Sequence record: NC_061447.1
Length of the DNA: 64,000 nt
Strand: one strand, 5' to 3'
The translations under genes and the position numbers were made by a program. Positions 3,622 to 61,109 of this stretch are shown here, piece by piece (the first letter of the stretch is position 1; the number at the start of each line of letters is the position of its first letter). The notes under the pieces were generated by a model, which searched no databases, was not told the origin of the DNA, and worked only from the letters and a program-made list of their open reading frames with translations.

Positions 3622-4443
3622 TTAATCACCTACCGCAGTATACCAGAAGTCCCAGCCAGCAGTATTGGTGCCAGTAGACTTGATGGTGAAGCCGCCTAAC
3701 AGGGCGTTCTCATTCATCGCGCTCGTACCGTCCAGATTGTAGAGCTGGTAGGTCCTTGCTTGGTTCAGAGCAGCGTTAACGAACGTGATGTTAATGCTGA
3801 TACAACGGTTGATGAATGCCGTGTTAAACACAACGTGGATGGTATCAGTAGTTGACGCGTTCACGACTCGACCCATGTTCTGAGTAAAGCCTGTGTTCAT
3901 GTCACGGTTACTACCAATCCATGCGTTCGGTATTACAGCGCCGGTGTTTGGGTTGAGCGCCTGAGACACACGATACTCGTCAATAGCAGCATCGCGTCCC
4001 GGGCTACCAGTAGGACCAGTTGCACCAGTAGGACCCACAGCGCCAGTGTTACCAGTAGCGCCGACAGGTCCTGTGTTACCAGTAGGTCCGTTACGGCCAC
4101 GAGGGCCACGAGGTCCCGGGCAACCATCTTCACCATCACGACCATCACGACCATCAGCACCAGGGAGACCGCGTAAGCCGTCTTTACCCTGTTTACCTTC
4201 GCGCCCTGATTTAAGCTGATCAGCAGTAGGCAGTCCGATAACACTAGACTGACTACCATCAGGCCAGATGACTGTTAGCGTACCTGTAGTTGTGTCAAAC
4301 TCAACACCCTGAGAGCCGGGAATCTTTGCAGCCTCTGTTGGGTCGATAAACGCAACAGCGGTCGCCGTCTTCTTACCCAACACTTTACCAACAGGCGAAG
4401 CACCGCCGTCGATAAGTGCAGGGTTAATCTTCGTAAGAGACAT
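3622..4443 (-). CDS. Collagen-like fibre protein with C-terminal gp53-like/lectin-type tip domain
   Basis: Uninterrupted Gly-X-Y run. The C-terminus HVVFNTAFINRCISINIT...GFTI...WYTAVGD is typical of phage fibre tip domains. Confidence 0.8.
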   Translation of the reverse strand: MSLTKINPALIDGGASPVGKVLGKKTATAVAFIDPTEAAKIPGSQGVEFDTTTGTLTVIWPDGSQSSVIGLPTADQLKSGREGKQGKDGLRGLPGADGRDGRDGEDGCPGPRGPRGRNGPTGNTGPVGATGNTGAVGPTGATGPTGSPGRDAAIDEYRVSQALNPNTGAVIPNAWIGSNRDMNTGFTQNMGRVVNASTTDTIHVVFNTAFINRCISINITFVNAALNQARTYQLYNLDGTSAMNENALLGGFTIKSTGTNTAGWDFWYTAVGD

Positions 4444-7588: not shown

Positions 7589-9613
7589 TTATCCAAATAC
7601 TACGCTGGTGATAGCGAGATAATCGAGGTCGTTCGAGTCACCACGGTCACCGCCACCTTGAACACGCAACCAAATTTCTTGGCCAACAGGTATGTTCACA
7701 TCGAACGTGAAATACTGATACGTTCCGCTGTTGTTTGCAGGATTCTTAGCAGCGCCTTCACCAGCAGTGCGCTCGTAGATCTCAATTGTGTGCCAGCCAC
7801 CATTCTTACCGTCGTACACCCATGCGAAAGTGATTTGCTTAATTGGCTTAGTGAAGAAGTTACCCCACTTGAACCAACCATTCACGCCACCCCAGATGTT
7901 CATGTAGTTACCGTCGCGTGTCCACACTTGAGAAGCATTAGGAGAACCTGTACCGCGTCCACCTGTCTGTTCCCATGCGTTTGGTTGCCACGGCAGAACG
8001 TCTGAATCTGGCGGCTGATCGTTACCACCTTCGATTGTTACGCAACGATAAGGAACGGTGAAGTCACTCACGTTAATCTTAGGAGGCTGAATCGGACAGT
8101 ACACGAAGTATGACCAATCACATCCGATAGGCGCTGTCGCTCGGACAGTGATGTTAGAGCGCAGCACATGCTCAGGGTACTTCCAAAATTCGAGTGTGCC
8201 AGTCTTGCCCGCAGCAACGATAGAGGTATCGAGCACGTTCATGTCTTGGTCAAACACTTCGAACTTGGTGTCGAACGAGTTCGCAACACAGACAACAAGC
8301 TCTGCACGAATGTCCGATTGAGTTCCTAACGCAAAATTATCTTCTGTGGTTGGATGACCGGCAGAGTACACGCTGTAGCTCTGGCAAGGGTGCATGTATT
8401 CACGCGCACCACGTTCACCTGGACAGTACAGACTATAGAAGCAACTCGCAAGCGAGGCAGCGTTACCAAAGTCCTTACTGACTACGCGCACCATGATATC
8501 ACATGCAACACCTTGAGGGTCAAAGTAGAAATACAGATAACCCTCACCAGTACGAGCGTCAAGCGTCGTAGCGATACGGCGACCAGACTGATAGACCTCA
8601 ATGAAGTCGAATGTTTCCCACGAGGTGTAGTCGAGATACATCCAGCCTGCTGTCCAGCCGATGAAGTGATAGTATTCGAAAGCGTTAGCATTCTGAATAC
8701 GTTCAGCGATAGGCCAAACAGTTGCGTGACACGGCGCAGGGAAGATTGGGCTACCGATGTAGTCTGGATGAATGACGTCAGGGAAATTGATAACGTCATA
8801 CGATGCCTGACTATCGAGAGCTAATCCGCCACGGTCAGAAGGTGCGGCAAGGCGCGGAGGATATACTTCTAAGCTCCAGCCATAACCCTGCGTTGTACGC
8901 ACACGCACCATGATACGCATATCAGCAGCGTCAGGGTCGAACTGGAATTTGATGCGCGAGCGACCGGCCAGCTTACCACACGTCGATGCAACACGCACAC
9001 CCATGTGGTACACGTCAACACTAGCACCAGCTGGTGCATAGGACGCGATCATCAGCTCCACGTACCCTTCGATTGCTGGCATTGCATAATACGTCTCGGT
9101 GATAACAGCACCACGCCCATGAACAGAAGCGTAAGGTACGTTAGGGTTAGCATAAGTGCCTAGCCCTGCGCGAGAAGCAACACCAGTAGGGTCGTATGAT
9201 TCGATGGTCTTGATGCCGGGTCTATTGATAGATCGACCAGTAGGAGGAGAGAAAGAGTTAATAAGACCGAAGCCAGTGCGACCAGCATCAGGTAAATCAA
9301 ACCCTGCAGGATAGCCTTTGAGGATATCGTATTTCTCACGGCCACCACTCCCTATTCCGTTACCAGAACCTTTGGTAGTTGACGTTGGACCGCCACCACA
9401 TGCGCCCGTCTCAAGGTTTGAACACGGGTCATCATACGTAGGGTCGAAAGAGTCGTTAATTGGTAACCAACTCTTTCCCCACTGATTACGCACACTGAAT
9501 TTGTCTGGGCTTAATGGCGTCCAGTCTCCTGCATGTGTGCGTATGAACATGGGCGTGTCCACGCAGTCAAGCCAACCGTTATTCGCAGCATTACGAACGC
9601 GAAAACGTGACAT
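7589..9613 (-). CDS. Virion structural protein with three tandem beta-sandwich repeats
   Basis: 674 aa. Three roughly 100-aa units with ...I.VRV...Y(P/C)P endings, located in the fibre cluster. Confidence 0.7.
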   Translation of the reverse strand: MSRFRVRNAANNGWLDCVDTPMFIRTHAGDWTPLSPDKFSVRNQWGKSWLPINDSFDPTYDDPCSNLETGACGGGPTSTTKGSGNGIGSGGREKYDILKGYPAGFDLPDAGRTGFGLINSFSPPTGRSINRPGIKTIESYDPTGVASRAGLGTYANPNVPYASVHGRGAVITETYYAMPAIEGYVELMIASYAPAGASVDVYHMGVRVASTCGKLAGRSRIKFQFDPDAADMRIMVRVRTTQGYGWSLEVYPPRLAAPSDRGGLALDSQASYDVINFPDVIHPDYIGSPIFPAPCHATVWPIAERIQNANAFEYYHFIGWTAGWMYLDYTSWETFDFIEVYQSGRRIATTLDARTGEGYLYFYFDPQGVACDIMVRVVSKDFGNAASLASCFYSLYCPGERGAREYMHPCQSYSVYSAGHPTTEDNFALGTQSDIRAELVVCVANSFDTKFEVFDQDMNVLDTSIVAAGKTGTLEFWKYPEHVLRSNITVRATAPIGCDWSYFVYCPIQPPKINVSDFTVPYRCVTIEGGNDQPPDSDVLPWQPNAWEQTGGRGTGSPNASQVWTRDGNYMNIWGGVNGWFKWGNFFTKPIKQITFAWVYDGKNGGWHTIEIYERTAGEGAAKNPANNSGTYQYFTFDVNIPVGQEIWLRVQGGGDRGDSNDLDYLAITSVVFG

Positions 9614-9622
9614 GCTCTCTCC

Positions 9623-10114
9623 TTACGGCCTTACCCAGATGGCGCCCGGTGCAATCTCATTATCAATGGCTGGGTCGGTGTCTTGTACGAAGACCATTAC
9701 AGTACCAGGATTACCCGGTGCACCAGTAGGTCCAGTAGGGCCTGTAGGACCAGCAGGACCGCGATTACCTACATAGCCTTGCTTACCTTGTTGACCATCA
9801 GAGCCACGAGGACCAGGACAGCCATCAGTACCGCGACGACCATCGCTACCCATGAGACCATCAATACCATCACGGCCAGCAGGACCAACGCCACCAGCAG
9901 GACCGTAGCCGATGCTGTGTATTGTAGGCAGACCAGAAATCTGGAGCTTGCCGATATTAGGGATGTTAATCGCCAGTAGACCTGTAACTGCATCGAATGA
10001 GCCGCTGAGTTGGCTATCATCCTGAACAGTATCAACTGTGATTCCCCCTTCGGTCGCTACGACAGGACCAGAAGCATTGGCCTTAACGAGCGATATATCA
10101 ACTTTTTCTACCAC
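9623..10114 (-). CDS. Collagen-like protein (163 aa)
   Basis: GTG start with AGGAGG RBS, Gly-X-Y run, C-terminal VFVQDTDP...GAIWVRP motif. Confidence 0.85.
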   Translation of the reverse strand: MVEKVDISLVKANASGPVVATEGGITVDTVQDDSQLSGSFDAVTGLLAINIPNIGKLQISGLPTIHSIGYGPAGGVGPAGRDGIDGLMGSDGRRGTDGCPGPRGSDGQQGKQGYVGNRGPAGPTGPTGPTGAPGNPGTVMVFVQDTDPAIDNEIAPGAIWVRP

Positions 10115-10123
10115 GTTGCCTCC

Positions 10124-10756
10124 TTATGGCCATGTGATATTCTGATCTTTGGTAGGGTCCACCCAGATTGTGCCAGCAGCAACGTTCCCTGGGTTAGTAG
10201 CACTGACGATGATAGACAGGCGTCCAGCAGGACCTGCAGGGCCGGTAGGACCAGTCGGTCCAGTAGAACCAGTAGCGCCTGTAGGACCAGTACCGCCACG
10301 AGGGCCAGTAGGACCAGTAGGACCCATAGGGCCTGTTCTACCATCTGGGCCAGTAGGACCAACAGGGCCTGGTAATCCGTCACGGCCATCTGGTCCTGGG
10401 ATACCCTGCTCACCATCTGGACCCACAGGACCAGTACACCCAGGCTCACCTGGATTACCATCGCGGCCATCTCGTCCGTCTTTACCATCAGCACCTGTCT
10501 CACCTCTACCGCCCTGACGACCTTCAGGTATATCAGCAGCAGTAGGGAAGCCGCCTACCTTAACTGTCTGCCCGTTAGCAAACTTGAGAGTAAGAATACC
10601 CGAAGTTGCATCGAACGACGAATCGGAAGTTACCTCTGAGGGAACCTGTTCGTCGCTAGGGTCTATCGAGAGAACCCCAGACTGAGCACGAATCGCAGTA
10701 GGCGTAGACGAAGAACCAGCCTGAATGAGACCGGTCTTAACTTTAATCAGACTCAT
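10124..10756 (-). CDS. Collagen-like protein (210 aa)
   Basis: Long Gly-X-Y run rich in GPT, C-terminal IIVSATNP...GTIWVDP motif, TAATG coupling to the upstream gene. Confidence 0.85.
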
Positions 10757-12195
10757 TACTTTTTCTCCGCTTTCGCAACAATATCCGTGTTGTGTGCGAG
10801 CACATCACCAACGAAATAACAATCAAATGGGTCAACGTCGATATCAACAGTCTTCACTTGATTATCTACGCGGCGGAACTCATACACTGACACAGGACCC
10901 TTACGACCAAGCACGGTATTCCCTGGCTGCACATCACGCGCAGGAATATAACGCCACACGCTATCGTCATATACAAGCACTGGATGTTCGTGTGTGAACT
11001 TCTGTCCGTTGATAACGAAGTAGTGATCTTCTTCGCCGTACTTCAAACCGACAACAGTAGCATTCACCAGATTACCTTTGAGACTTGGCGAAGACCACTG
11101 ACGGAAGTTCTTAGGCTGATTAGAGAAACTCAGCAGGCTATCACCTACACGTAAGTCCTCGGCAGCTTTAGGTCCTGTAATTGTTTCGACAACAGAACCA
11201 AACACAATACAGCCAGACGTTGAGCTTGTTGGGTTACGTGCAACAACTGTTAGCGCAGAACTCACAGTAACAGTAGGACGTGACGCTTGGCCCAGGTCAG
11301 TAACTACGCAACGGATTGTGCCTTTGATTGTACGATCAGCACCAAGTCCGAGACGCAGATAGAAGTTAACAATACACGTTGAGGTATCAGTAGCGCCAAG
11401 CGTTACGCCCTCAGTAGTTGTGATAGACCATTGATACTTATATGGACCTACACCACCACGCGCATTGACAGGAAGGTATGCAAGCGAAGTAAATACATCA
11501 GAGCCTTGCACTGCACGTTGACCTACCATGTACAGGTTAGACACTGACGCAGCAAGAGGCGTTATAGTAGGCAGAGGAGGTGCTGGCGTAACGTTTGCTG
11601 TAGGGTACAACCAAACGAACACACGACCATCTGTAGGCTGCGTGTTAGACTGAACAGCAGTTGTAATAGGCGCTGGACCAGTAGGCCCTGTAGCACCCGA
11701 GATGCAGCTTGCTCCAGTAGCGCCACGAGGACCGATGTTGCCAGTAGGACCAGGAGGACCGTCTGGGCCCGTAGGACCGTCTGGACCTTGACGCCCAGTA
11801 TCACCAGGAGGACCGTCTTCACCATCACGTCCTGGGTCACCAACAGGACCAGTCTTACCTTTAGAGCCAGGACCACCTTCGCAGCCCTGTCTGCCTGTTT
11901 CACCATCTCGACCATCACGTCCGTCACGGCCAGGAGCACCTGGAGCGCCTCGACGCCCAGGTTTCCCTTCACCGAACATAGCAATAGTAGGAAGTCCGGG
12001 GACGTTCACTACTTCCCCGTTCTTCTTGATGAACACCAACACGCCTGTCTTGCTGTTAAACCTTACGCTTGCGATCTGAGTATTCGTCGCTAAGTCCGTA
12101 GACTCAAACTCGACGCTACCATCAACACCGACCAGCGATTTACCTTCATCGTTAGCCGTTGTTTCGATTTGCGAAAGTTTTAACTGTGTTGTCAT
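10756..12195 (-). CDS. Collagen-like fibre protein with Ig-like domain and C-terminal Hint (intein-like) domain
   Basis: Gly-X-Y run, then [10 protein letters not shown] Ig-like domain. Hint blocks: G/CIVFGSVV (A), FTHEHP (B), VDIDVD (F), LAHN/T (G); Hint spans 10789..11211. Confidence 0.85.
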
Positions 12196-45558: not shown

Positions 45559-46689
45559 TTAAATTTTTCTGCTATCAATGTCAGTCTGAGGAATATATCT
45601 GTTTTCGAAGTATTTCGAGACAATTTCTACCCCATTTAAGGTGTATACGTTGCGCAGACTATATCCCCAAACCATTAGCTCCGCAAGCGTTGCGAAGTGC
45701 TCGGCGGGTACCGAACTGATTGCCCTTGGGGAGAGCGAATCTGGGTGGATTTTCTTACCACGGATGGCCTGATCGAACTTCATACGGTCAACGTTACGTA
45801 TCATCGTATGGTCTACAAAGTGGGCCAATTCGTGCGTAATAACGTGGGCCATGGACAGGCTATTATAGCCACCAAGCAATTGCACCAACTGCTGAGGATG
45901 GATAGAGATAGCACCATACATAAAGCCATGCACGACATACGTTGAAATGTGACTTCCGCCACTATCCGAGTTAGCTTTTAACAGGCCAACATACAGACGT
46001 TTGAACGGCAGCGGCAAGTTAAGACCTATACCAGGCATAACGTTTTCCTGAATGTCTTTAAGCACATAATCAGGAGGGCTAATACCGTTCTTTTCGAGAG
46101 TCACGCCAGGCACACGTAAATCATCCATACCCATTACTTCAAGATGCACTTTGCCGCACTTCTTAACAGGCTTGATGGAGTAGTTATTAGGTGTACCGCC
46201 AGGATAGATTGCAGACGCGTACTTCAATGGTTTGAAATTACCAAAATCAGGCATATCCATAAGACGACGCTGTGCTGCCTTCATCGAATCTGGAGTATCT
46301 TCGCCTGGTCGGTCATCATTACCTTTGAATATAGGCGGTGCAGGTTCAGTCTCTGCTTTCTTGACTGATACTGGTTTTGGCTCAGGTTCTGCTGGTGGCG
46401 CTGGCTTCTTATTCTTCTCCTCATATGGAGTGAAGTCGAAGTCAGGCTTAAAGAGAGCGTCAGGCTTTGCAGTGAATGGGCGACTATTCTCAATGAGTTT
46501 GTCACCGTCGTCTCCACTGATAGCGTAAGCCTGATCGTATTTAGGATGGGCTATGTAGTACAGGTCGCTACTAACCTTTAACAGGCCAATGACCTCGCGA
46601 GTCTCCATATGGACACCGTTTGAGATCATGGCCGCAGGACCGAGATAGCGATAGTACGAATAGTCTGTGATGGACAGACTTCCGAGCAT
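45559..46689 (-). CDS. Putative zinc metallopeptidase (HExxH) with the repeated N-terminal domain
   Basis: ITHELAHFVDH at 45820-45834 and downstream EHFATLAE. ATG 46689 overlaps the upstream TGA (TGATG), preferred over the track start. Confidence 0.7.
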   Translation of the reverse strand: MLGSLSITDYSYYRYLGPAAMISNGVHMETREVIGLLKVSSDLYYIAHPKYDQAYAISGDDGDKLIENSRPFTAKPDALFKPDFDFTPYEEKNKKPAPPAEPEPKPVSVKKAETEPAPPIFKGNDDRPGEDTPDSMKAAQRRLMDMPDFGNFKPLKYASAIYPGGTPNNYSIKPVKKCGKVHLEVMGMDDLRVPGVTLEKNGISPPDYVLKDIQENVMPGIGLNLPLPFKRLYVGLLKANSDSGGSHISTYVVHGFMYGAISIHPQQLVQLLGGYNSLSMAHVITHELAHFVDHTMIRNVDRMKFDQAIRGKKIHPDSLSPRAISSVPAEHFATLAELMVWGYSLRNVYTLNGVEIVSKYFENRYIPQTDIDSRKI

Positions 46690-47893: not shown

Positions 47894-48775
47894 TTAACCT
47901 CGCAGTGCTCCACGCGCCCACGACTTAGCGAGTGCCAGAGTCATACGCGTAGGGTTATGCAGCTTGACTTCACCTTTATGGACAGCGGTAAAAGGCTCAT
48001 GTGGATTAGAACCACGACCAGAGCGATATGCTGCTTCGTTGAATCCATCAAACAGCGTTACCACCCAACCAGTCGATTTATCAGAGCATTCACCGCAGGC
48101 TTTATCCCACGCAATCTTACCGCACACACGGCCACCAGCAGTAACAGCGTAGCTAACCTGCTCAGTGCCTTTGTAGATATCAGGCGACTTGAGTGTTTTG
48201 AAGGTGACACGCGACGCAGACTCAGAGCGCGGCATCATCTTCTCTTTCAGTGCTTCTACGTCGAGTGAACCCCAGAAGGATTCAAACAGCGCAGCGAACT
48301 TCTGTTCGATAGGAAGTTCGAGGGCATTGATTTGTGCGATAGTGCTGGAGCTATCTTCCAGCACACGATTCAGGAAGTACCCGCCGATAATCACAGGCAT
48401 TTGTGTACCCTGCGAGCCAGTAGTCAAGCCAGCTTTCTTGCAGTAGATTTCAGACAGGCCGATAGCCAGACGCGCAAGAGTCATGAACGTCTGCTTCTCG
48501 GTCGAGTTAGCAATCTCTGTGTAGATACGTGCAGCGATAGCAGGGACGACGGTGCGTTTAGCCACGCTCAGGATATCTTCTGGCTTGATTGGTTGGCCGA
48601 GCTTCTTACGCGCAGCCAGTTCGAATGCGTTAATCAGGCTGGCTTTGTTCGCCGTCGTCAGCGACTCGCCTAACTTCGTAGTTGTCGTTTCCGCACTGCT
48701 CACTATTCCCTGTTGCGGCGTTTTCTCCAGTCGGCGTACTCCCGACGTCGATCTCACCAATCGCTTCACTGTCAT
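47894..48775 (-). CDS. Hypothetical protein (about 293 aa)
   Basis: AGGA RBS before ATG 48775 (MTVKRLVRSTSG). The longer track start lies deeper inside the GT gene. Confidence 0.75.
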   Translation of the reverse strand: MTVKRLVRSTSGVRRLEKTPQQGIVSSAETTTTKLGESLTTANKASLINAFELAARKKLGQPIKPEDILSVAKRTVVPAIAARIYTEIANSTEKQTFMTLARLAIGLSEIYCKKAGLTTGSQGTQMPVIIGGYFLNRVLEDSSSTIAQINALELPIEQKFAALFESFWGSLDVEALKEKMMPRSESASRVTFKTLKSPDIYKGTEQVSYAVTAGGRVCGKIAWDKACGECSDKSTGWVVTLFDGFNEAAYRSGRGSNPHEPFTAVHKGEVKLHNPTRMTLALAKSWARGALRG

Positions 48776-49883
48776 TTGTTTGTTCCTGAGTAGCAGGCTG
48801 CTGCAAATAGGCAAGCAGACCAGAGTTCTGAATTGCCTCTTCCAGATTCTCACCACGATGAATGGTAAGCTGGGCGAGGTAGTTGAGAGCAGGTTCAACC
48901 ATACCGAGATTACGACAGCCCCAATAAGCTGTTTCGTAACATAGGTCTAAATTAATAGCGGTCTGGTCAAACAAGAAACTTTTTGGATTCTGCTTAGTGA
49001 CTTCAATGCCCTGAATAGCCATGCCAGTAGCGTTCATCATATCGTTGTGACGATAGAAGATATCCGCCAGCATTGCATAGCACTCAATGCGATCAGGGCG
49101 GGATGCGATAGCTCGGTAACATGCAGCAATCGCTTCCTGTGTGAATCCCTGTTTGAATACCGCTTTCGCCAGTTCGATGTTAGCGATAGAAACATAGTCA
49201 GCCCATCGCGCAATACCAGCCAGGCGATCTACTTCACGTCGCGCATCATCCAGCAAATCAGGACGTTCGTGATAGCTCACTGCGTAGCACAGCTCACGCG
49301 CATAGTAGAAGCTGCAACGATCATCATGAGGATAATCACCAACATCCCGTCCAAGCTCCAGCAGATAACCGCGAGGCTTCGAGTGGTCAGGATAGTGGTC
49401 AGTTGCGAAGGTCGCTTCGACGGTACGCAGGTTCTGGCCAGGCTTACGAGAAGACAGGACTTCATGCGCACGATACTTCCAGAAGTAAGAGCGACGACGA
49501 TACGCTTTCATCTGCTGGTAGTGACTATCACCGTTGCGCATCAGAATCCAAACTGCTTCGGCATGTTTAATGTGCTTCGTGTTGCGTAGCGTTTCAACCC
49601 AATTAGGGTCATCGAAACGTTCATCAATATCAAGCCACACAACGAGATCATCTTCGGAGAATGGCGTAGCGGCCAGTTCACGACTCGCGCCCAGATTACG
49701 TTCTTCTGACACGTCGAACATATGGTACAGGTTAGGGTGCGTGAACGCAGAGATGATGTTTGTGGTTTGGTCTTCGCTGCCCGTGTCTACGATACTGATT
49801 GCATCAGCACCAGCTACGTGCTCCAACCACTCACGCATATTCTTTTCTTCATTGCGACAGATAGCCGCTACGCAAATTCTCAT
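48630..49883 (-). CDS. Glycosyltransferase family 2 with TPR-like C-terminal region
   Basis: ICRNEEKN...IVDTGSEDQT and WLDIDE (DxD) motifs, HEVL, then helical TPR-like repeats (FYYAREL, AIAACYRAI...YAMLADIFY). GAGG RBS. Confidence 0.88.
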   Translation of the reverse strand: MRICVAAICRNEEKNMREWLEHVAGADAISIVDTGSEDQTTNIISAFTHPNLYHMFDVSEERNLGASRELAATPFSEDDLVVWLDIDERFDDPNWVETLRNTKHIKHAEAVWILMRNGDSHYQQMKAYRRRSYFWKYRAHEVLSSRKPGQNLRTVEATFATDHYPDHSKPRGYLLELGRDVGDYPHDDRCSFYYARELCYAVSYHERPDLLDDARREVDRLAGIARWADYVSIANIELAKAVFKQGFTQEAIAACYRAIASRPDRIECYAMLADIFYRHNDMMNATGMAIQGIEVTKQNPKSFLFDQTAINLDLCYETAYWGCRNLGMVEPALNYLAQLTIHRGENLEEAIQNSGLLAYLQQPATQEQTNDSEAIGEIDVGSTPTGENAATGNSEQCGNDNYEVRRVADDGEQSQPD

Positions 49884-49899
49884 ACATGCCTCATTTGGG

Positions 49900-50817
49900 T
49901 TATACTAAAATGTTACCACTATCCCACCACTGCTTGCCATAGATATCCGACAGGCGATAGTCAAGGATAAGTGGTTGGTCAAGGTCGACTTGCGTTATGT
50001 TACGCCCTAAAGCAGGACTCCAAACTGTTTTCTCCTCAGTGTAGAGTCTTATCTCAAGTTCAATGTCGCCTTGCGAGTTCTTCGGCACAAACGGATGCGA
50101 GTAGTCACCATCAAAGCCTGCACCGAGCGAGTCGTCAAAGTAAGTGTACGCACGGATTTCTTCCGCACTGTTAATGATTGTAGGCGCGTACACCTGACGG
50201 TTGTAATAGGAAGTGTAGTCAGCAACGGTTGATTGCACGACAACACGGCGCTTGTAGATTCGCGTTACACCTTTGCTGTCAGTCTCTGCGCGATACTGGT
50301 TGTAGTACCAGCTTATCTGCGCAAACTTAACAGGCTTCAATGTAGGCTGACCTGTGGCGTACTTCATGAACGGCTTCGCAGTGAAACGATGGTACGTCTT
50401 CTGCGTGTTCAATCGGTACAACAGAACCTGATACGTGTACCACTGATAAACATCAAGGGTAATCGTACCGCTATCAGACTGCTGTGTGCCGTTAGTCAGG
50501 ATGTAAGCGAAACAGTCTGCACCAACGTAACCGCTTCGAGGACTGTAGATAAAGGCTTCGTTCAGATTGTTCAGTCGCACCGTGCCGACCAGTGGGTCAT
50601 TGACCTTGATCGCAGAAAGGCGCCAACCCCTTTGAGCTGGCACCTTATCCAATACACCCTCAGTTGGGCTATGCAACGTCACTTCGTCACGAGCGCCTTG
50701 TAAGATCTTTTCGAGCGTTATCTCAGTGTCACCTGAGTTACGCACTCGCACAGTCAGGTTCGGAGCCAATGGCTTATAGTTACGCCAGTAGTCGAACGTA
50801 CAAGGCAAAGAGAGCAT
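49900..50817 (-). CDS. Virion protein with a cadherin/Big_9-type Ig-like domain
   Basis: GTVRL...FIYSPRSGYVGADCFAYILTNG...SDSGTITLDV is the typical tandem-95/Big_9 pattern. GGAG RBS. Confidence 0.7.
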   Translation of the reverse strand: MLSLPCTFDYWRNYKPLAPNLTVRVRNSGDTEITLEKILQGARDEVTLHSPTEGVLDKVPAQRGWRLSAIKVNDPLVGTVRLNNLNEAFIYSPRSGYVGADCFAYILTNGTQQSDSGTITLDVYQWYTYQVLLYRLNTQKTYHRFTAKPFMKYATGQPTLKPVKFAQISWYYNQYRAETDSKGVTRIYKRRVVVQSTVADYTSYYNRQVYAPTIINSAEEIRAYTYFDDSLGAGFDGDYSHPFVPKNSQGDIELEIRLYTEEKTVWSPALGRNITQVDLDQPLILDYRLSDIYGKQWWDSGNILV

Positions 50818-50819
50818 AA

Positions 50820-52766
50820 TCACTCCAGTTTGTATTTGCTCTTGAACTCCGCGATACTCATAACAGGAATGCCTTTGTCTATGGCCTTCTGGAGTTTCGC
50901 AGAACCAGAGCCAGGGTCTTTAGCAATCAGGATCGTCGTGTCGGACTTCATGCTGTCTGACGCTGTACCACCAAGCTCGACAATGCGTTGCATCAGGTCG
51001 CGGTCACGTACACCAGTGAATGCTACGTTAATGCCTTTCAGTTTGGCATTAACCACCTTCACTTTCTTCGGTGCAACGAGAGTCACATCCATCTCGACAG
51101 CCATCAGATAAGACTTAACGGCCGCGTCTGCAATTTGTGGTGCGAGTTTATCGACGCCGTGCATACTGCTAATCTTTGTCGTCAGGTCAGCAGTCTTGCC
51201 TTTCTTGAGATACTGCTCAAGGTTAGGTACGGCATCAACAACTTTGTCGAACGTAGTGTTAGCACCACGCATGAAGAATGAAGCAGTAGCTTTCAGCCAC
51301 GTATTCATCGGCACGCCAGCTTTCAGCACCTTCAGGTCTTTCGCCAGTTGACGACCGCGTGAATCACCAACGATCTCACGCAGAGAAGCCATAGGCGTCA
51401 TGAACAATTGCTGAGGTGTTTTGATACCAGACTCAACAAGCAGCTTACAGGTACTTGGTCCTGTGTTCGCTACGTCCAGACCCTTCAGGAACGAACCTAA
51501 CATACGAGCATCAGCAGCACTGGTCTTCGTCTTAGCAATGAACTCAACGCCATTGATTTTGTACGGCACATCAGGCAGCTTAGGCTTCTTAGCAGGCTTG
51601 AGAATCTCCATGATGTATGGGATTACCTTACCGCTTCGAATCAACTTAACCTTAGCGCCCGGGCCGATAGGTTTCTTCGTACCCAGCACAGCACCTTTCT
51701 TCTTCGGCTTGAGATAGCCGTGCTCAACGTAAAAGCCGTTGTGCGCAGAAGCACGTTCAACAGTCACACCGCCAGGCATAACAGTAGGCGGGAAGATTGC
51801 AACAGGAGCCAGCACACCGTACTTGGTCTCCTGATAGATTACGTCTTTGACAGTCACGATAACCGTATCGGACTCAACGTTCATCTTGAACTTGAAGGCG
51901 TGTTTAGGGTTACTGGCAGTCGCCTTAGGAGTAGGAACATCGCGGGTCATTACGATCCCATCGAGTTCATACTTCGCTTTAGCAATACGCTTGTCCAGCC
52001 AAGGAATGAGTTCTTCCTCAGAGTCGAAACGCATAGGACCAAAGTGGCGTACTACCTCGAATCCCCATTTCTCCAGCAGCTTGAACTGAGAAGACTGCTT
52101 GAGCGTAGCACCCTTACCACCGATGATACCGAAGCACACCATGTGGACGTACTTGAACTCTTTCGCAGTCTCAAAGTTACGCACCAGACCAGACGCTGCG
52201 TTACGTGCGGCTTTGAAGCGACCACCAGCAGATTCATGCAGCTTGGCCATGAATGTCTTATATGGAATCAGCGCTTCACAGCGCAAGACCACTTGGCCTT
52301 TCTCAGAGATTTTCTGAGGGATGCGCATTGCAGGCAGATGCTGCGACACGTCTTTACCATGAGTTGCATCGCCACGAGTAAGCGCACGAACAGGTACGCC
52401 TTTCTCATAGACAATTTCAATACTCAGGCCGTCGAGCTTATCAGTGAGAACCCAATCAACGTCTTCGGCCAGAGCCTTAGATAATTGTTTCCCACCGAGC
52501 ACGTACTGGTCGAGACTCGCCATCGGCACAGGCAGCTTAACATCCGAATCATCACGCGCACCGACTTTACGCGCCAGCTTAGACTTAGGCCAGCGCTTGT
52601 CGATGTAATTGCGAATATGATCGTACACTGCATCAGATATCAGACCTTCCGAATCAGTGTGGAACGCATCATCCAGATGCGCCACAAGTTTCGTTGCCTG
52701 CGTCAAATTGAGCGTGTCCAGAACCTTATCAGGATTCTTTTCGAGCCGCTTCAAAGAGATTTGCAT
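50820..52766 (-). CDS. ligA: NAD-dependent DNA ligase
   Basis: ISDAVYD, KLDGLS (motif I), TRGDATHGKDVS, RNAASG, LDGIV, AFKFK, C-terminal BRCT (FTG.RD...GG...SGSAKLQKA). ATG 52766 with GGAGA RBS. Confidence 0.95.
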   Translation of the reverse strand: MQISLKRLEKNPDKVLDTLNLTQATKLVAHLDDAFHTDSEGLISDAVYDHIRNYIDKRWPKSKLARKVGARDDSDVKLPVPMASLDQYVLGGKQLSKALAEDVDWVLTDKLDGLSIEIVYEKGVPVRALTRGDATHGKDVSQHLPAMRIPQKISEKGQVVLRCEALIPYKTFMAKLHESAGGRFKAARNAASGLVRNFETAKEFKYVHMVCFGIIGGKGATLKQSSQFKLLEKWGFEVVRHFGPMRFDSEEELIPWLDKRIAKAKYELDGIVMTRDVPTPKATASNPKHAFKFKMNVESDTVIVTVKDVIYQETKYGVLAPVAIFPPTVMPGGVTVERASAHNGFYVEHGYLKPKKKGAVLGTKKPIGPGAKVKLIRSGKVIPYIMEILKPAKKPKLPDVPYKINGVEFIAKTKTSAADARMLGSFLKGLDVANTGPSTCKLLVESGIKTPQQLFMTPMASLREIVGDSRGRQLAKDLKVLKAGVPMNTWLKATASFFMRGANTTFDKVVDAVPNLEQYLKKGKTADLTTKISSMHGVDKLAPQIADAAVKSYLMAVEMDVTLVAPKKVKVVNAKLKGINVAFTGVRDRDLMQRIVELGGTASDSMKSDTTILIAKDPGSGSAKLQKAIDKGIPVMSIAEFKSKYKLE

Positions 52767-52805
52767 GTTATTCTCCAATCGTCAGTAACACTGGTATTTA
52801 CAGCC

Positions 52806-54677
52806 TTAACTGGCGATAGGGTCTTTGTTGACAGGATAATCTTCGGCCATATCGAGCACACGATTGAACAGCTTAGGAGGCATGTCTTTCACATGTTCGG
52901 CATAGTCAAAGAGGTTCTGTTTACGCGCACGGTTCACACGTACCTGACGAACTTCATCAGGGCTATTGGTGATATCGTACAGCGTATAGATGACGATGTT
53001 GTCGGACTGAGAGTGTGTACTGACTTTCAACACAACCCAATCACGATTCAACTTGGCGTCTGCTCTGAACTTGAGCACGTCACCTTCTTCGGCCTCTTGA
53101 GCACGATGATCAGGAGTAGACTTGTTAGCAGCAGCGATTTTCTTCGCTGTCTCTTTCGCTTCCTGGTCGGCAGCGGCAACGTCAGAGTCCGTGTCTTCTT
53201 CTGCGGAGGTTTCGTCTACCGCATCAGAGGTATCAGCGTCCTCTTCTTCTCCATCTTCACCTTCTCCGTCAGCTCCTGTGTCGTCAGAGGTGTCATCATC
53301 CATGGATTCGGAATCATCGTCGGAGGTGTCGTCCCCATCCTCTGCATCATCAGCATTCGGATCGCTATCGTCAGTACCTTCTTCTGCATCAGGGTCCTCC
53401 TCTTCCTCAGAGCCGTCATCTGCTTCTGGATCATCTTCCTCTTCGGTACCATCATCTGCTTCTGGGTCTTCTTCCTCAGCAGGTGCAGTAGCTTTCTTGC
53501 CTTTAGCGCGAACCTTAGGCGGAGGTGTATCTTCCTCATCCTCTTCTGGTTCGTCTATATCAGACAAGTCGAGCGCAGGTTCTTCGTGGTCTGTAGAATC
53601 ATCACCACCAAACAACGAGCCGATAGAATCTTCGATGTTGAAAGCGTCGCCAGCGAACGGACTACGCGACAGGATATCTTCCAGCTTCTGCTCGTCAATA
53701 TCGAGGTCAGTCACTTCTTCGATATCGTCATCGAGAATCTCTTCCTCGATAACCTTAATGCGCTTACCGCGTTTGTCGATACCGTCAGCATAGACAGTAC
53801 GCACTTCGGCTTTAGGTGCCTCGATCTCACCAGACTTAACCTTAGCACGAAGGTCACGCATCTCAGCAGAGCGCTCTTGAGCTTTCTTACGCGCTTCTTT
53901 CTGGAGTTCTTTGCGTTGCTGCTTCTGCTCCAGAATCTTCGCGTTGTTTGCAAGACGTTGCGCTTCTTCCTGTTCCTCTTGAGAACGACGACGCGCCTTG
54001 CGAACGATACGGCGATATGCCTTGACCGTATCAACATCGACAGTGCCTTTCGGCCAGTCATTGATAGGCAGGATGTTAGTGTCATGCACCAGCAGGTCGT
54101 ACTGCGCATCGTCCACTTTCAGGTACATACCATCAGTGTTGACAACGATGCCGCCTTTGCCCTGTCTAAGGAAGCGCACACCAATCATATCGTTTTTGTA
54201 CAGCTTGGTCATACCCTTAGAGGTTTTCACAGGGTATTCAGGGCTTGAAACCATACGCCACTGATAGTTATCAAAGTCGAGGCCATTAACAGCTTCGGCT
54301 TTCACACCACGAGGGCTGAAACGCGCTGCATCAAATTGACTGCGCATCAACTGGCGCTGCAATGTTTTAGCACCAGCAGTTTTAACGCGCTTCCCTTCTG
54401 TGTTTAACACGTCAGGTACCTTGCGCATTTTCGATGCACGTTCCATCAAGAATAGTCCAGTAGACTTATCAAGAGGGAAGTCAACATGGGGCATATCAGG
54501 GAAAATCAGAGTGTAGCGTCCGCCATTACGCAGCGGGAGAATACCGAAGATATCACCTTCACGAATCATGCGTTTATGAGTTCGTTGGGATACTTCTTTT
54601 CCGCGTGAACCTGTATACTTCATCCACGCGTACTTCGATACGGCATCTTGATAGGATGCAGATACGGAAAGTACCAT
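52806..54677 (-). CDS. Hypothetical protein with two copies of the repeated domain, a coiled-coil and an acidic tract
   Basis: Start MVLSVSASY (ATG 54677). WMKYTG...EGDIFGI...DMPHVDFPLD domain, long D/E-rich region, C-terminal beta domain. Confidence 0.8.
   Translation of the reverse strand: MVLSVSASYQDAVSKYAWMKYTGSRGKEVSQRTHKRMIREGDIFGILPLRNGGRYTLIFPDMPHVDFPLDKSTGLFLMERASKMRKVPDVLNTEGKRVKTAGAKTLQRQLMRSQFDAARFSPRGVKAEAVNGLDFDNYQWRMVSSPEYPVKTSKGMTKLYKNDMIGVRFLRQGKGGIVVNTDGMYLKVDDAQYDLLVHDTNILPINDWPKGTVDVDTVKAYRRIVRKARRRSQEEQEEAQRLANNAKILEQKQQRKELQKEARKKAQERSAEMRDLRAKVKSGEIEAPKAEVRTVYADGIDKRGKRIKVIEEEILDDDIEEVTDLDIDEQKLEDILSRSPFAGDAFNIEDSIGSLFGGDDSTDHEEPALDLSDIDEPEEDEEDTPPPKVRAKGKKATAPAEEEDPEADDGTEEEDDPEADDGSEEEEDPDAEEGTDDSDPNADDAEDGDDTSDDDSESMDDDTSDDTGADGEGEDGEEEDADTSDAVDETSAEEDTDSDVAAADQEAKETAKKIAAANKSTPDHRAQEAEEGDVLKFRADAKLNRDWVVLKVSTHSQSDNIVIYTLYDITNSPDEVRQVRVNRARKQNLFDYAEHVKDMPPKLFNRVLDMAEDYPVNKDPIAS
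53385..53480 (-). repeat. About three degenerate 36-nt tandem repeats encoding EE(E/D)DP(E/D)A(D/E)(D/E)G(T/S)
   Basis: Protein EEEDPEADDGT-EEEDDPEADDGS-EEEEDPDAEEGT. DNA repeats CATCTGCTTCTGG. Boundaries approximate. Confidence 0.7.
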
Positions 54678-54710
54678 GTTATTGTCTCTATGTTGTACGA
54701 ACACACGATG

Positions 54711-58922: not shown

Positions 58923-60104
58923 TTAGGCTCCGGCGCCTTCTGGGGCTTTATAGCCTTGCAGCAGGAAGATACGCATACCTGTGTTGTTCGGACTGTTAGC
59001 AGTCAGAGCTTTGTAGGTACGTTTCTTCGGAGTGCTACCGTCGTCTTCTTTCTCGTTGTACACCTGAACATCAATCAGGGTACCGTTCGAGATAACGTCA
59101 GCAGACGCGTAACCAACCATATCCATTTCATATGGGTAGCTGTAACGCTGCGTGTTGAAACCTGCAGGCAGACGGAAGTCGAAGTGATTATCTTCGGAGA
59201 ACGGAACCATCTGGTACGGGTTAAGAACAGCAGAGCTATCAGCACTGTGGATATGCGCTGGCGCTGGAACAGTCGGGGCGTTCACGTCAGCTTCACGCAC
59301 GGTAAAGCGCATGATCTGATATGAGCCTGGGCTATTCGGAACAGGACGCACTTCGTCGTTGTTGTTCATGGAGCCGCCGCCGTTCACAGAGAACATGCAG
59401 AACAGTGGAGCTTTACCATCAACCACAACAGTACCATCAGAGTTGATAGCACGTTGAACTACGAGCCACGCACCGCGGCAGCCATCGGAGTCACGGCCTT
59501 CAACCTGAATGTGAATCGCAACGCCGTGATCAGACAGAGCGATGTGATACGTGAACGGAGTTGCTTCCGGGTCAGCGAACACAAGACTGTCAGGGCTGGT
59601 CTGCGCGGTAGGCTGAGTAGTGGCTGGTGGATAAGCCATCGTACCGCCGTAGTACGTAGTGTTACCCTGGTTCACGATGCCGCGATGCCAGAAGTACACT
59701 TCGTTATCACCTGATGCTGGGTTGAGCTGTGAGTTAGTCGAACGACCACCAATCTGACCAGCGTATTCACTGATAGTGGAAGAGCCGAGTGTAATGGCTC
59801 CAATCTTAGAGATGGTTCCAGTGTCAGAGATCTGCTCAGGTGCAGCACAGAAAAGCTGAGTGCGCTTCTCGGTGCCTTTCATCGCCAGACGCCAGCGCTG
59901 TTGACCTGCACCAGTGCCAGAGATTGGGTCGATAGTGCTTGTCGCTTCGATAACGAAAGACGCAAGGTCAGTCGAAGGGATAGAAGAAGCGATAGTACCG
60001 TTCACGCTCACCAGCTTGAAGCCGTTATCAACCAGATCCTGCAGGATTGATTTCCACATTTTCAGGTTGCTGGTGAAGCCGGATTTCACGATCAGTTTGT
60101 TCAT
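58923..60104 (-). CDS. Virion structural protein, paralogue of 60123..61109
   Basis: Shares P(F/L)TY....DHG(V/I)A(I/L)HI..EG.D..G....W.VVQR...PLF..FS..GGG and Y..(M/L)DM.GY.SADV.S motifs. Highly biased codons. Confidence 0.8.
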   Translation of the reverse strand: MNKLIVKSGFTSNLKMWKSILQDLVDNGFKLVSVNGTIASSIPSTDLASFVIEATSTIDPISGTGAGQQRWRLAMKGTEKRTQLFCAAPEQISDTGTISKIGAITLGSSTISEYAGQIGGRSTNSQLNPASGDNEVYFWHRGIVNQGNTTYYGGTMAYPPATTQPTAQTSPDSLVFADPEATPFTYHIALSDHGVAIHIQVEGRDSDGCRGAWLVVQRAINSDGTVVVDGKAPLFCMFSVNGGGSMNNNDEVRPVPNSPGSYQIMRFTVREADVNAPTVPAPAHIHSADSSAVLNPYQMVPFSEDNHFDFRLPAGFNTQRYSYPYEMDMVGYASADVISNGTLIDVQVYNEKEDDGSTPKKRTYKALTANSPNNTGMRIFLLQGYKAPEGAGA

Positions 60105-60122: not shown

Positions 60123-61109
60123 TTAAGCCGCGCTGCCTGTGCCGATAGGAAGCATCAGACGCATACCACGGTTGTCTTTACCGTTCGCGTTCATGCCCAG
60201 GTATTTGGTTTTGTTTGCTTGTTTCAGAGGGTTCAACTCTACTTCCGAACCAGCAGACAGAACGTCGGCAGAAGTATAGCCCAGCATGTCCAGTGTAGCG
60301 AAGTACACGTAACGCTGAGTGTTGATCATCTGTGGGAACAGAACGATAGCACGGTTCCCCTCTGCGATCATAACCTGCTGGAGCGGGTTGATGATTGGCG
60401 CAGAGTCAGGAGTAGGCTGCACGGCAGACACAGGAAGAGTAGCAGAGAAAATGCCGTCTTCGATTACTGTGTAGCGCAGAGCCGCTTCTGGTTTGATGGT
60501 ATCGGGGTCGCCAGCAAGACCGCCGCCGCAGGAGAAGATAGCGAACAGTGGGCTATGATCGCCAGGAGTGGTATCACCTGTCTGAACGCCACGCTGAACA
60601 ACGAACCAGCTAAACGCTGTGCCTTTGTTGTCGAAGCCTTCTGCGTTGATGTGCAGAGCGATGCCGTGATCGGTAGTGATGAAGTCATACGTCAGCGGGT
60701 ATGCGGACATATCAGCGGCTGCGTCCATCTTCCAGTCATTGACCAGATCGATGAAGAAGTTAGCAACCAGACCACCTTTAGACATACGGCCTACTTCTTC
60801 GGTAGCAGAGCGTTTGGCCGCAGTGTAGTCGGTGCTGTTTACCTGGTTGTCAGGCAGCACGTTCACGCTAAGAGTTTTAGCGGTGTTGTCAGCAGAGAGG
60901 ATGATACCCCACTTTTGGTTCTGATAGAGCGGGTCTACTGAGGCAGAAGCCAGCAGATAGAAAGTCTTACCAGAAGGTGTTACGGTAGATCCAGCAGTGC
61001 CGTCAACAGCAACAAGCGAGAAGCCCGCTGTAATCATTTTGCCTACAAGATCGCGGGTCAGTGCTTCCAGACCTACGAGCTTAGTGGCATTTACACGTTG
61101 AATAGCCAT
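60123..61109 (-). CDS. Virion structural protein, paralogue of 58923..60104
   Basis: Same shared motifs, highly biased codon usage. Confidence 0.8.
   Translation of the reverse strand: MAIQRVNATKLVGLEALTRDLVGKMITAGFSLVAVDGTAGSTVTPSGKTFYLLASASVDPLYQNQKWGIILSADNTAKTLSVNVLPDNQVNSTDYTAAKRSATEEVGRMSKGGLVANFFIDLVNDWKMDAAADMSAYPLTYDFITTDHGIALHINAEGFDNKGTAFSWFVVQRGVQTGDTTPGDHSPLFAIFSCGGGLAGDPDTIKPEAALRYTVIEDGIFSATLPVSAVQPTPDSAPIINPLQQVMIAEGNRAIVLFPQMINTQRYVYFATLDMLGYTSADVLSAGSEVELNPLKQANKTKYLGMNANGKDNRGMRLMLPIGTGSAA

Follow-up and report, generated by a model that had tools for sequence, protein, structure and literature searches.

A GT2-TPR glycosyltransferase gene of Erwinia phage pEa_SNUABM_33 and its possible action on collagen-like fibres

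A glycosyltransferase and four collagen-like proteins

The window analysed here is a 64-kb stretch of DNA, which matches bases 62001-126000 of the 263,237-bp genome of Erwinia phage pEa_SNUABM_33 (NC_061447.1), an Alexandravirus, with 100% identity. It contains gp148 (RefSeq MPK70_gp148), a gene of 417 amino acids (aa) at 48630..49883 on the minus strand, stop codon included. The original prediction, made from the letters of the window, had read this gene as a glycosyltransferase (GT) of the GT2 type followed by tetratricopeptide repeats (TPR), and had proposed that it may glycosylate collagen-like hairs encoded in the same window, or the capsid. The ATG start codon was kept as called, because the N-terminus is conserved in all homologues.

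Both domains were recovered. Pfam PF00535 (Glycos_transf_2) matched residues 5-116 with 29.7 bits, for a cut-off of 23.3, and this was the sole GT2 match across the 263-kb genome. The TPR were weak by sequence, TPR_MalT scoring 17.7 bits, under its cut-off, but they were clear in an AlphaFold2 model of gp148 built on 30 homologues (predicted local distance difference test, pLDDT, 86). Designed TPR proteins of the PDB also matched the gp148 sequence (E 1e-10). NCBIfam held no informative family for the protein. In RefSeq it is named “beta-1,4-glycosyltransferase”, a name taken from phrog_13126, which it matches with an E-value of 4e-119.

Three parts can be distinguished on the model, all encoded on the minus strand. 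The GT-A catalytic domain (residues 1-170, 49374..49883) is modelled with a pLDDT above 90 and has structural matches, described below. It is followed by a TPR-like helical domain of about ten helices (residues 174-360, 48804..49364), delimited from the AlphaFold2 model, VIA and hhalign, which we presume to be the module that binds the acceptor protein. The protein ends with an acidic tail (residues 363-417, with the stop codon 48630..48797), which is disordered, judging from its pLDDT below 50 and its composition: 13 D/E and two K/R in 55 aa, with a conserved end ...SEQS(K/Q)PD. This tail is found only in enzymes of the Alexandra, Y3, Yoloswag and Yersinia-phage types, and is missing from the JA-type and most distant homologues.

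The motifs of a GT-A transferase are present: D33-T-G-S-x-D38 for nucleotide binding, D85-x-D87-E88 as the DxD motif (D85-I-D87-E88 in gp148), H140-E141, and H163/D166/K169/R171. Their columns are invariant in 30 jumbo-phage sequences, down to 26% identity. No transmembrane segment was detected, the maximum Kyte-Doolittle mean over 19 residues being 0.84. With no such hydrophobic segment, gp148 should be a soluble, cytoplasmic protein.

The only collagen-like genes of the genome are gp105, gp109, gp110 and gp111. All four lie in the window on the minus strand, and each encodes a collagen-like fibre protein that is a candidate acceptor. In gp105 (3622..4443; Pfam Collagen, E 5.6e-15), 7 of the 24 Gly-X-Y triplets have Thr at Y. 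The product of gp109 (9623..10114; Pfam Collagen) has 23 triplets and a tract of three GPT. The strongest candidate is gp110 (10124..10756; Pfam Collagen), with 34 triplets, 12 Thr at Y, and G-X-Thr in nine of its final 16 triplets. Finally, gp111 (10756..12195) has 29 triplets, six with Thr at Y, and combines its Collagen match with a C-terminal PT-HINT (Hint-like) domain. Each protein starts with an N-terminal domain of about 75 aa and continues with a collagen run of 23-34 triplets, of which the first half is charged (GRDGRD...) and the second half is a G-X-Thr tract. Over the four proteins, Thr occupies Y in 28 of 110 triplets (25%), and 14 of these are GPT. The collagens had been described as GPT-rich. 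Four Pfam Collagen genes with Thr tracts are indeed there, but overall Thr is no richer than in a sample of phage collagens (see below), so that the description is true of local tracts only.

Structural relatives of gp148

The best full-length PDB matches of the gp148 model were the peptide S-glycosyltransferases ThuS and SunS (PDB 7MSN, 7MSP, 7MSK), with a Foldseek E-value of 4e-12. VIA alignments with SunS/ThuS reached Z 20.3 (263 residues) and Z 19.8 (309 residues, between positions 1 and 362 of gp148). Taken separately, the GT-A part (residues 1-175) reached Z 17 with WrtF and 14.9 with TarS, and the helical part Z 15-16 with OGT and other TPR domains. By sequence, the sole natural protein of the PDB that matched gp148 was the N-domain of GmaR, the flagellin O-GlcNAc (N-acetylglucosamine) transferase of Listeria (phmmer E 2.5e-8). 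The SunS/ThuS-like fold and the GmaR match together indicate a GT2-TPR enzyme directed at proteins or peptides.

None of these relatives is an exact counterpart. Like gp148, SunS and ThuS consist of a GT-A domain followed by TPR-like helical repeats, and they act on a peptide, but identity is only 12-16%, and the gp148 family is tied to collagen genes instead. A glycocin system of the SunS kind was rejected, as no precursor, transporter or thiol-disulfide genes are annotated near gp148. GmaR shares the GT2-TPR architecture and the similarity in the GT2 N-domain, and is a protein O-glycosyltransferase. It is, however, much longer, has flagellin as acceptor and plays a regulatory (anti-repressor) role, whereas the phage has no flagellin.

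A closer parallel is SgtA of Clostridioides difficile, a spore glycosyltransferase whose acceptor is BclA3, a collagen-like protein of the exosporium. Of the 358 aa of SgtA, 1-260 form the GT-A domain and 262-358 contain four TPRs; the gene is a neighbour of bclA3 (PMC7157674). The recombinant enzyme uses UDP-GlcNAc as its only donor, with a preference for Mn2+, and attaches beta-O-GlcNAc to Thr, as well as to Ser, of peptides taken from the GPT collagen region of BclA3. Deletion of sgtA leads to the loss of the spore-surface glycoprotein (PMC7157674). Both SgtA and gp148 place an N-terminal GT-A and a C-terminal TPR domain within about 360 aa, are metal-dependent and are tied to collagen-like genes. 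They differ in that gp148 comes from a phage of a Gram-negative host, is encoded 36-46 kb from the collagens, carries the extra 55-aa acidic tail and belongs to a divergent branch.

A virus enzyme that glycosylates virus-encoded collagen-like fibre proteins exists in Mimivirus, where L230 is a collagen hydroxylase/glycosyltransferase. Mimivirus is a giant virus of eukaryotes, and L230, which places glucose on hydroxylysine, differs from gp148 in enzyme family and in chemistry.

Linkage of the enzyme family to collagen genes

The GT2-TPR family is very large, with at least 8000 members that are 360-375 aa long and match the GT2 and TPR models of Pfam; among the best 120 of about 8000 relatives listed, none is named C. 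difficile. To collect viral members, IMG/VR was scanned with a pattern taken from the alignment and with tblastn, which gave 55 distant homologues (24-32% identity, 346-385 aa) falling into 21 lineages at 60% identity. A collagen-like run was found within 2.5 kb of the GT gene in 8 of the 21 lineage representatives, on the same strand in seven of the eight. The proportion of Thr at Y in these GT-adjacent collagens was 33-92%, save for one lineage at 14%. The density of collagen loci was 0.77 per 10 kb near the GT gene, versus 0.12 per 10 kb farther out.

Some of these arrangements are very tight. On viral contig L040, a run of 90 triplets, 83 of them with Thr at Y, ends 585 bp upstream of the GT gene. 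On contig L060, which carries portal and capsid genes, a collagen protein of 435 aa ends 14 nt before it. On viral contig L080, two tandem GT genes, both phrog_13126 (8854-11113), precede genes for two collagen proteins, one of 1310 and the other of 475 aa. An unrelated actinophage, DSL-LC01, has two annotated collagen genes just upstream of its GT gene. In this phage, a gene annotated as tryptophan halogenase stands between the collagen genes and the GT gene (L012 2535-9077), and a UDP-galactopyranose mutase gene and a second glycosyltransferase gene are located about 6 kb away (L012 14805-16941). There are hints here of a more elaborate fibre glycan. Five GT-positive viral contigs had no collagen nearby, and four of them had one elsewhere.

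The same linkage was seen in bacteria. A scan of one genome per prokaryotic species returned at least 579 relatives. The best 80, almost all from spore-forming Bacillota, were examined and provided 79 loci, from Oscillospiraceae, Eubacteriaceae, Lachnospiraceae, Anaerovoracaceae, Cellulosilyticaceae and Tissierellia. Collagen runs were present at 48 of the 79 loci. In 43 of these the run was within 2.5 kb of the GT gene, in 40 it was also on the strand of that gene, and in 39 it lay upstream. The usual distance, 500-800 bp, corresponds to the globular domain at the C-terminus of the collagen protein. In these collagens, up to 0.97 of the Y positions were Thr. Whole-genome pattern counts gave only a few collagen loci per 3-6 Mb in these genomes, so that adjacency by chance is expected in around one per cent of cases. 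In Aminipila (L137:1111-3298), two GT paralogues in tandem come after the gene of a (GPTGDT)n protein. Tandem GT2-TPR genes, as in Aminipila and L080, suggest that two sugars are added one after the other or that the two enzymes differ in acceptor specificity. As a reverse control, 80 arbitrary viral loci with a collagen pattern were examined, on short flanks only. A relative of the GT was present at three of them, and their median Thr at Y was 0.30.

Does gp148 itself belong to this collagen-adjacent group? The jumbo-phage alignment (A1) and an alignment of 29 collagen-adjacent members (A2) were compared with hhalign, which aligned them at probability 100 (E 2.1e-77) over 335 columns covering both domains, with 26% identity. 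The match reaches gp148 residue 352, and the catalytic residues are retained, the columns of the GT-A motifs given above being invariant in both A1 and A2. With such a full-length match, gp148 is a true member of the collagen-adjacent GT2-TPR superfamily. The family is probably that of SgtA, judging from architecture, size and gene context; the comparison covered the published length, domains and gene position of SgtA.

Within the superfamily, the enterobacterial jumbo phages form the most divergent branch. Of 46 residues that are invariant in the collagen-adjacent members, their enzymes keep 26-30, PaBG and Lu11 keep 34-35, and DSL-LC01 keeps 43. The P-W-R of the PWRFD motif is altered in the enterobacterial clade, and the catalytic residues are all present. 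A FastTree tree of 164 rows, rooted at midpoint, placed this clade on a long branch and gave it no reliable sister group. The divergence, together with the acquired acidic tail, could be taken to mean that gp148 has lost its transferase role in this clade and works mainly through its TPR domain, for instance by helping fibres or head proteins to assemble, in the manner of a chaperone. We find this very improbable, as the motifs for nucleotide, metal and catalysis are invariant across the 30 jumbo-phage sequences, as expected under selection on catalysis.

Co-occurrence of GT and collagen genes across phages had been put forward as a check on the proposal, and was examined in the lineage defined by the capsid protein. 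All six GT-positive genomes tested (pEa_SNUABM_33, Sen-NF, PaBG, Lu11, HRDY3 and fHe-Yen9-02) contain collagen, with 82-106 pattern matches per genome on the structural strand. Conversely, the more distant relatives PhiXhv-15, Motura, BcepSaruman, phiRSL1 and Voja-6, with capsids at 29-36% identity, have neither the GT (by profile search) nor a collagen run, in five out of five. In this lineage, then, the two genes go together, but the rule does not extend to every virus, as one complete GT-positive viral genome has no collagen.

Neighbourhood of gp148 and its probable acceptors

As originally described, gp148 sits among late genes beside the head module. The genes around it are all on the minus strand and make up one long structural block, in which it lies two genes upstream of the prohead protease gene. 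In gene order, it includes two adjacent tail-sheath paralogues (58923-60104 and 60123-61109, minus strand, both phrog_12249), which precede the head genes and are well separated from the main tail module. They are followed by a 1375-aa protein, a protein of the KMPT-N type (“KTSC and metallopeptidase N-terminal fusion domain”; 52806-54704, minus strand), and a complete NAD-dependent DNA ligase with adenylation, OB and BRCT domains (50820-52778, minus strand), embedded in the structural block. Next come gp149 and the GT, then two unknown proteins, the prohead protease, a second KMPT-N protein (45559-46689, minus strand), an “ATPase”, a structural protein, the major capsid protein and tail genes. 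The two KMPT-N genes thus flank the ligase-GT-protease segment. gp149 (49900-50823, minus strand) encodes 307 aa with a bacterial Ig-like (Big_9) domain, directly upstream of gp148 with a gap of 16 nt. Its position is kept in Sen-NF and fHe-Yen9-02, and small open reading frames are found there instead in PaBG and Lu11. Scans for promoters and terminators around gp148 gave fewer sites than shuffled sequence. The list of open reading frames of the window also holds a frame of 334 aa with a TTG start (47894-48898, minus strand) that overlaps the 3′ end of the GT gene. A PHROG match and RefSeq back the shorter gp147 (223 aa, 47894-48565) over this frame.

Homologues of gp148 are present in all Erwinia, Dickeya, Yersinia and Salmonella relatives, with 43-95% identity, and in the Pseudomonas phages PaBG, Lu11 and HRDY3, with about 26% identity. 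From the Erwinia phages to these three, all relatives have kept the order ligase, small gene (where present), GT, two genes, prohead protease and, farther on, capsid. The Y3, AD1 and JA phages and Lu11, of the same lineage, are labelled “hairy Myoviridae” in the literature.

This location raises the main rival to a role in collagen glycosylation, namely that gp148 modifies other virion proteins: the major capsid protein, the Ig-like gp149 (a possible alternative acceptor or decoration protein), or the tail. Its place beside head-morphogenesis genes would fit such a role, as would the constant adjacency of the GT and an Ig-like protein in the enterobacterial clade, and a complete GT-positive phage without collagen indicates that the family can have other acceptors. 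There is also a precedent, since mycobacteriophages are described as glycosylating their capsid and tail-tube proteins (Freeman et al. 2023, as cited in PMC12619734). Phages of the Che8, Corndog and Myrna type resemble our proposal in that phage-encoded glycosyltransferases decorate the phage's own virion proteins. As presented by that citing source, their case differs in that the acceptors are the C-termini of capsid or tail-tube subunits, the hosts are Actinobacteria, the GT belong to other families and no collagen is involved. Two observations speak against other virion acceptors for gp148: the recurrent neighbour of the family is a collagen gene and not a capsid gene, and the GT-negative relatives keep the same capsid yet have no collagens. 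We therefore hold these acceptors to be unlikely.

The wide distribution of the gene also bears on a possible modification of a host glycoconjugate during infection, be it the lipopolysaccharide (LPS) core, lipo-oligosaccharide or a precursor of exopolysaccharide, with superinfection exclusion as one conceivable purpose. The database names point that way: “beta-1,4-glycosyltransferase” and “moron” in PHROG and RefSeq, and lipo-oligosaccharide glucosyltransferase for the PaBG orthologue. A weak match to the GtrB-like phrog_841 (E 1.8e-5) adds to them, and cytoplasmic GT2 enzymes do build LPS cores. However, the gene keeps its position in lytic jumbo phages whose hosts (Erwinia, Dickeya, Yersinia, Salmonella and Pseudomonas) have different surface glycans, and a fixed position across hosts with unrelated glycans makes a host-specific LPS “moron” unlikely. 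Moreover, the TPR domain and the SunS-like fold indicate a protein acceptor, and the family is linked to collagen genes rather than to LPS loci. Altogether, we judge this role quite improbable. Serotype conversion of the GtrB type was rejected, gp148 having no membrane anchor and the genome annotation no partners of the GtrA or GtrC type.

Glycosylation of the phage DNA, on a hypermodified base and as a means of restriction evasion, was the other alternative considered from the start. Phage DNA glycosyltransferases are diverse (Pyle et al. 2024, as cited in PMC12619734), a DNA ligase gene lies close to gp148, and the genome has one gene of the thymidylate synthase family, in principle a possible hydroxymethylase. 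This is gp045 (genome 27071-28177, plus strand, outside the window), a “hypothetical protein” of RefSeq and a 368-aa thymidylate synthase homologue (Pfam E 2e-55). It scores 122.9 bits against the TIGR03284 equivalog, for a cut-off of 108.35, and matches the PHROG thymidylate synthase, which favours an ordinary enzyme. The genome annotation has no other hypermodification genes, the structures nearest to gp148 act on peptides or glycans, and a DNA substrate would explain neither the TPR domain nor the collagen linkage. This is the least probable of the readings considered. Both alternatives named by the original prediction, DNA and LPS, are thus weakened and stand as minor rivals.

We return to the collagens. 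That gp148 is a protein glycosyltransferase acting on the Gly-X-Thr collagens of the phage is supported by its fold, its homology, the SgtA precedent and co-occurrence. Because its family usually adjoins Thr-rich collagen genes in other phages and in spore-formers, gp148 probably acts on collagen fibres. From these sequence comparisons, we consider it rather probable that it O-glycosylates the four collagen-like fibres of the phage itself.

Several points weigh against this reading. First, the arrangement in pEa_SNUABM_33 is not the one seen elsewhere, as the GT gene is on the same strand as the collagens but 36-46 kb away from them, the nearest, gp111, being at about 36 kb. The 25% of Thr at Y in the window collagens is close to the median of arbitrary phage collagens (0.30), and GT-adjacent collagens elsewhere mostly have 0.4-0.97. 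Second, the family is not strictly tied to collagen: there is none within 8 kb at 31 of the 79 bacterial loci, and a complete GT-positive phage genome of 258,965 bp (the IMG/VR contig behind L061) has no collagen run of eight triplets or more, so that other acceptors exist in the family. Third, the divergence of the enterobacterial clade, in its invariant residues and in the P-W-R positions, also counts here, and acceptor or donor specificity may have drifted in that clade. The co-occurrence in the capsid-defined lineage may, for its part, reflect a single gain or loss. Last, the literature contains no glycoprotein stain or mass spectrometry of glycans for pEa_SNUABM_33 or any relative, and the virion proteome of PaBG lists only 14 abundant proteins.

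If the collagen fibres are the acceptors, the following scheme can be proposed, in which acceptor, donor sugar, timing and benefit are all inferred. gp148 would be a soluble, cytoplasmic, metal-dependent GT-A enzyme fused to a TPR-like protein-binding domain, as in the SgtA architecture. Late in infection, it would take a nucleotide sugar of the host, which by analogy could be UDP-GlcNAc, made by every host, and transfer the sugar to the hydroxyl of Thr, perhaps also of Ser, at the Y position of the G-X-Thr tracts. The targets would be the tracts at the ends of the collagen regions of gp105, gp109, gp110 and gp111. Transfer before or during trimer assembly would produce a virion with glycosylated collagen fibres, and the benefit might be fibre stability, adhesion or shielding.

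Part of this proposal is already known, namely the SgtA-like kind of enzyme and the glycosylation of phage virions in mycobacteriophages. What we propose as new is their combination, in which jumbo phages that infect Gram-negative bacteria encode a glycosyltransferase for collagen fibres. This combination is absent from the searchable literature, in which we found no report of phage collagen glycosylation and no study of the gp148 gene in Y3, AD1, PaBG or Alexandravirus phages. A broader idea, to which we give an even chance, is that glycosylated collagen fibres are widespread in tailed phages, including the “hairy” jumbo phages, and are made by SgtA-like GT2-TPR enzymes with the chemistry of the exosporium nap. 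The pair of genes would have moved between Bacillota and phages, and the glycan coat would aid stability, adhesion or shielding.

Should our reading of gp148 be right, pEa_SNUABM_33 would be the first phage known to glycosylate collagen-like virion fibres and, among phages of Gram-negative hosts, the first for which glycosylation of a virion protein has been proposed. A function would be assigned to the phrog_13126 gene, the “beta-1,4-glycosyltransferase, moron” of the databases, and thousands of unannotated GT2-TPR genes of phages and spore-formers would be linked to one type of acceptor. Jumbo phages of Erwinia and Dickeya are used in biocontrol, and fibres coated with glycans could affect how these phages adsorb, how stable they are in the environment and how antibodies recognise them.

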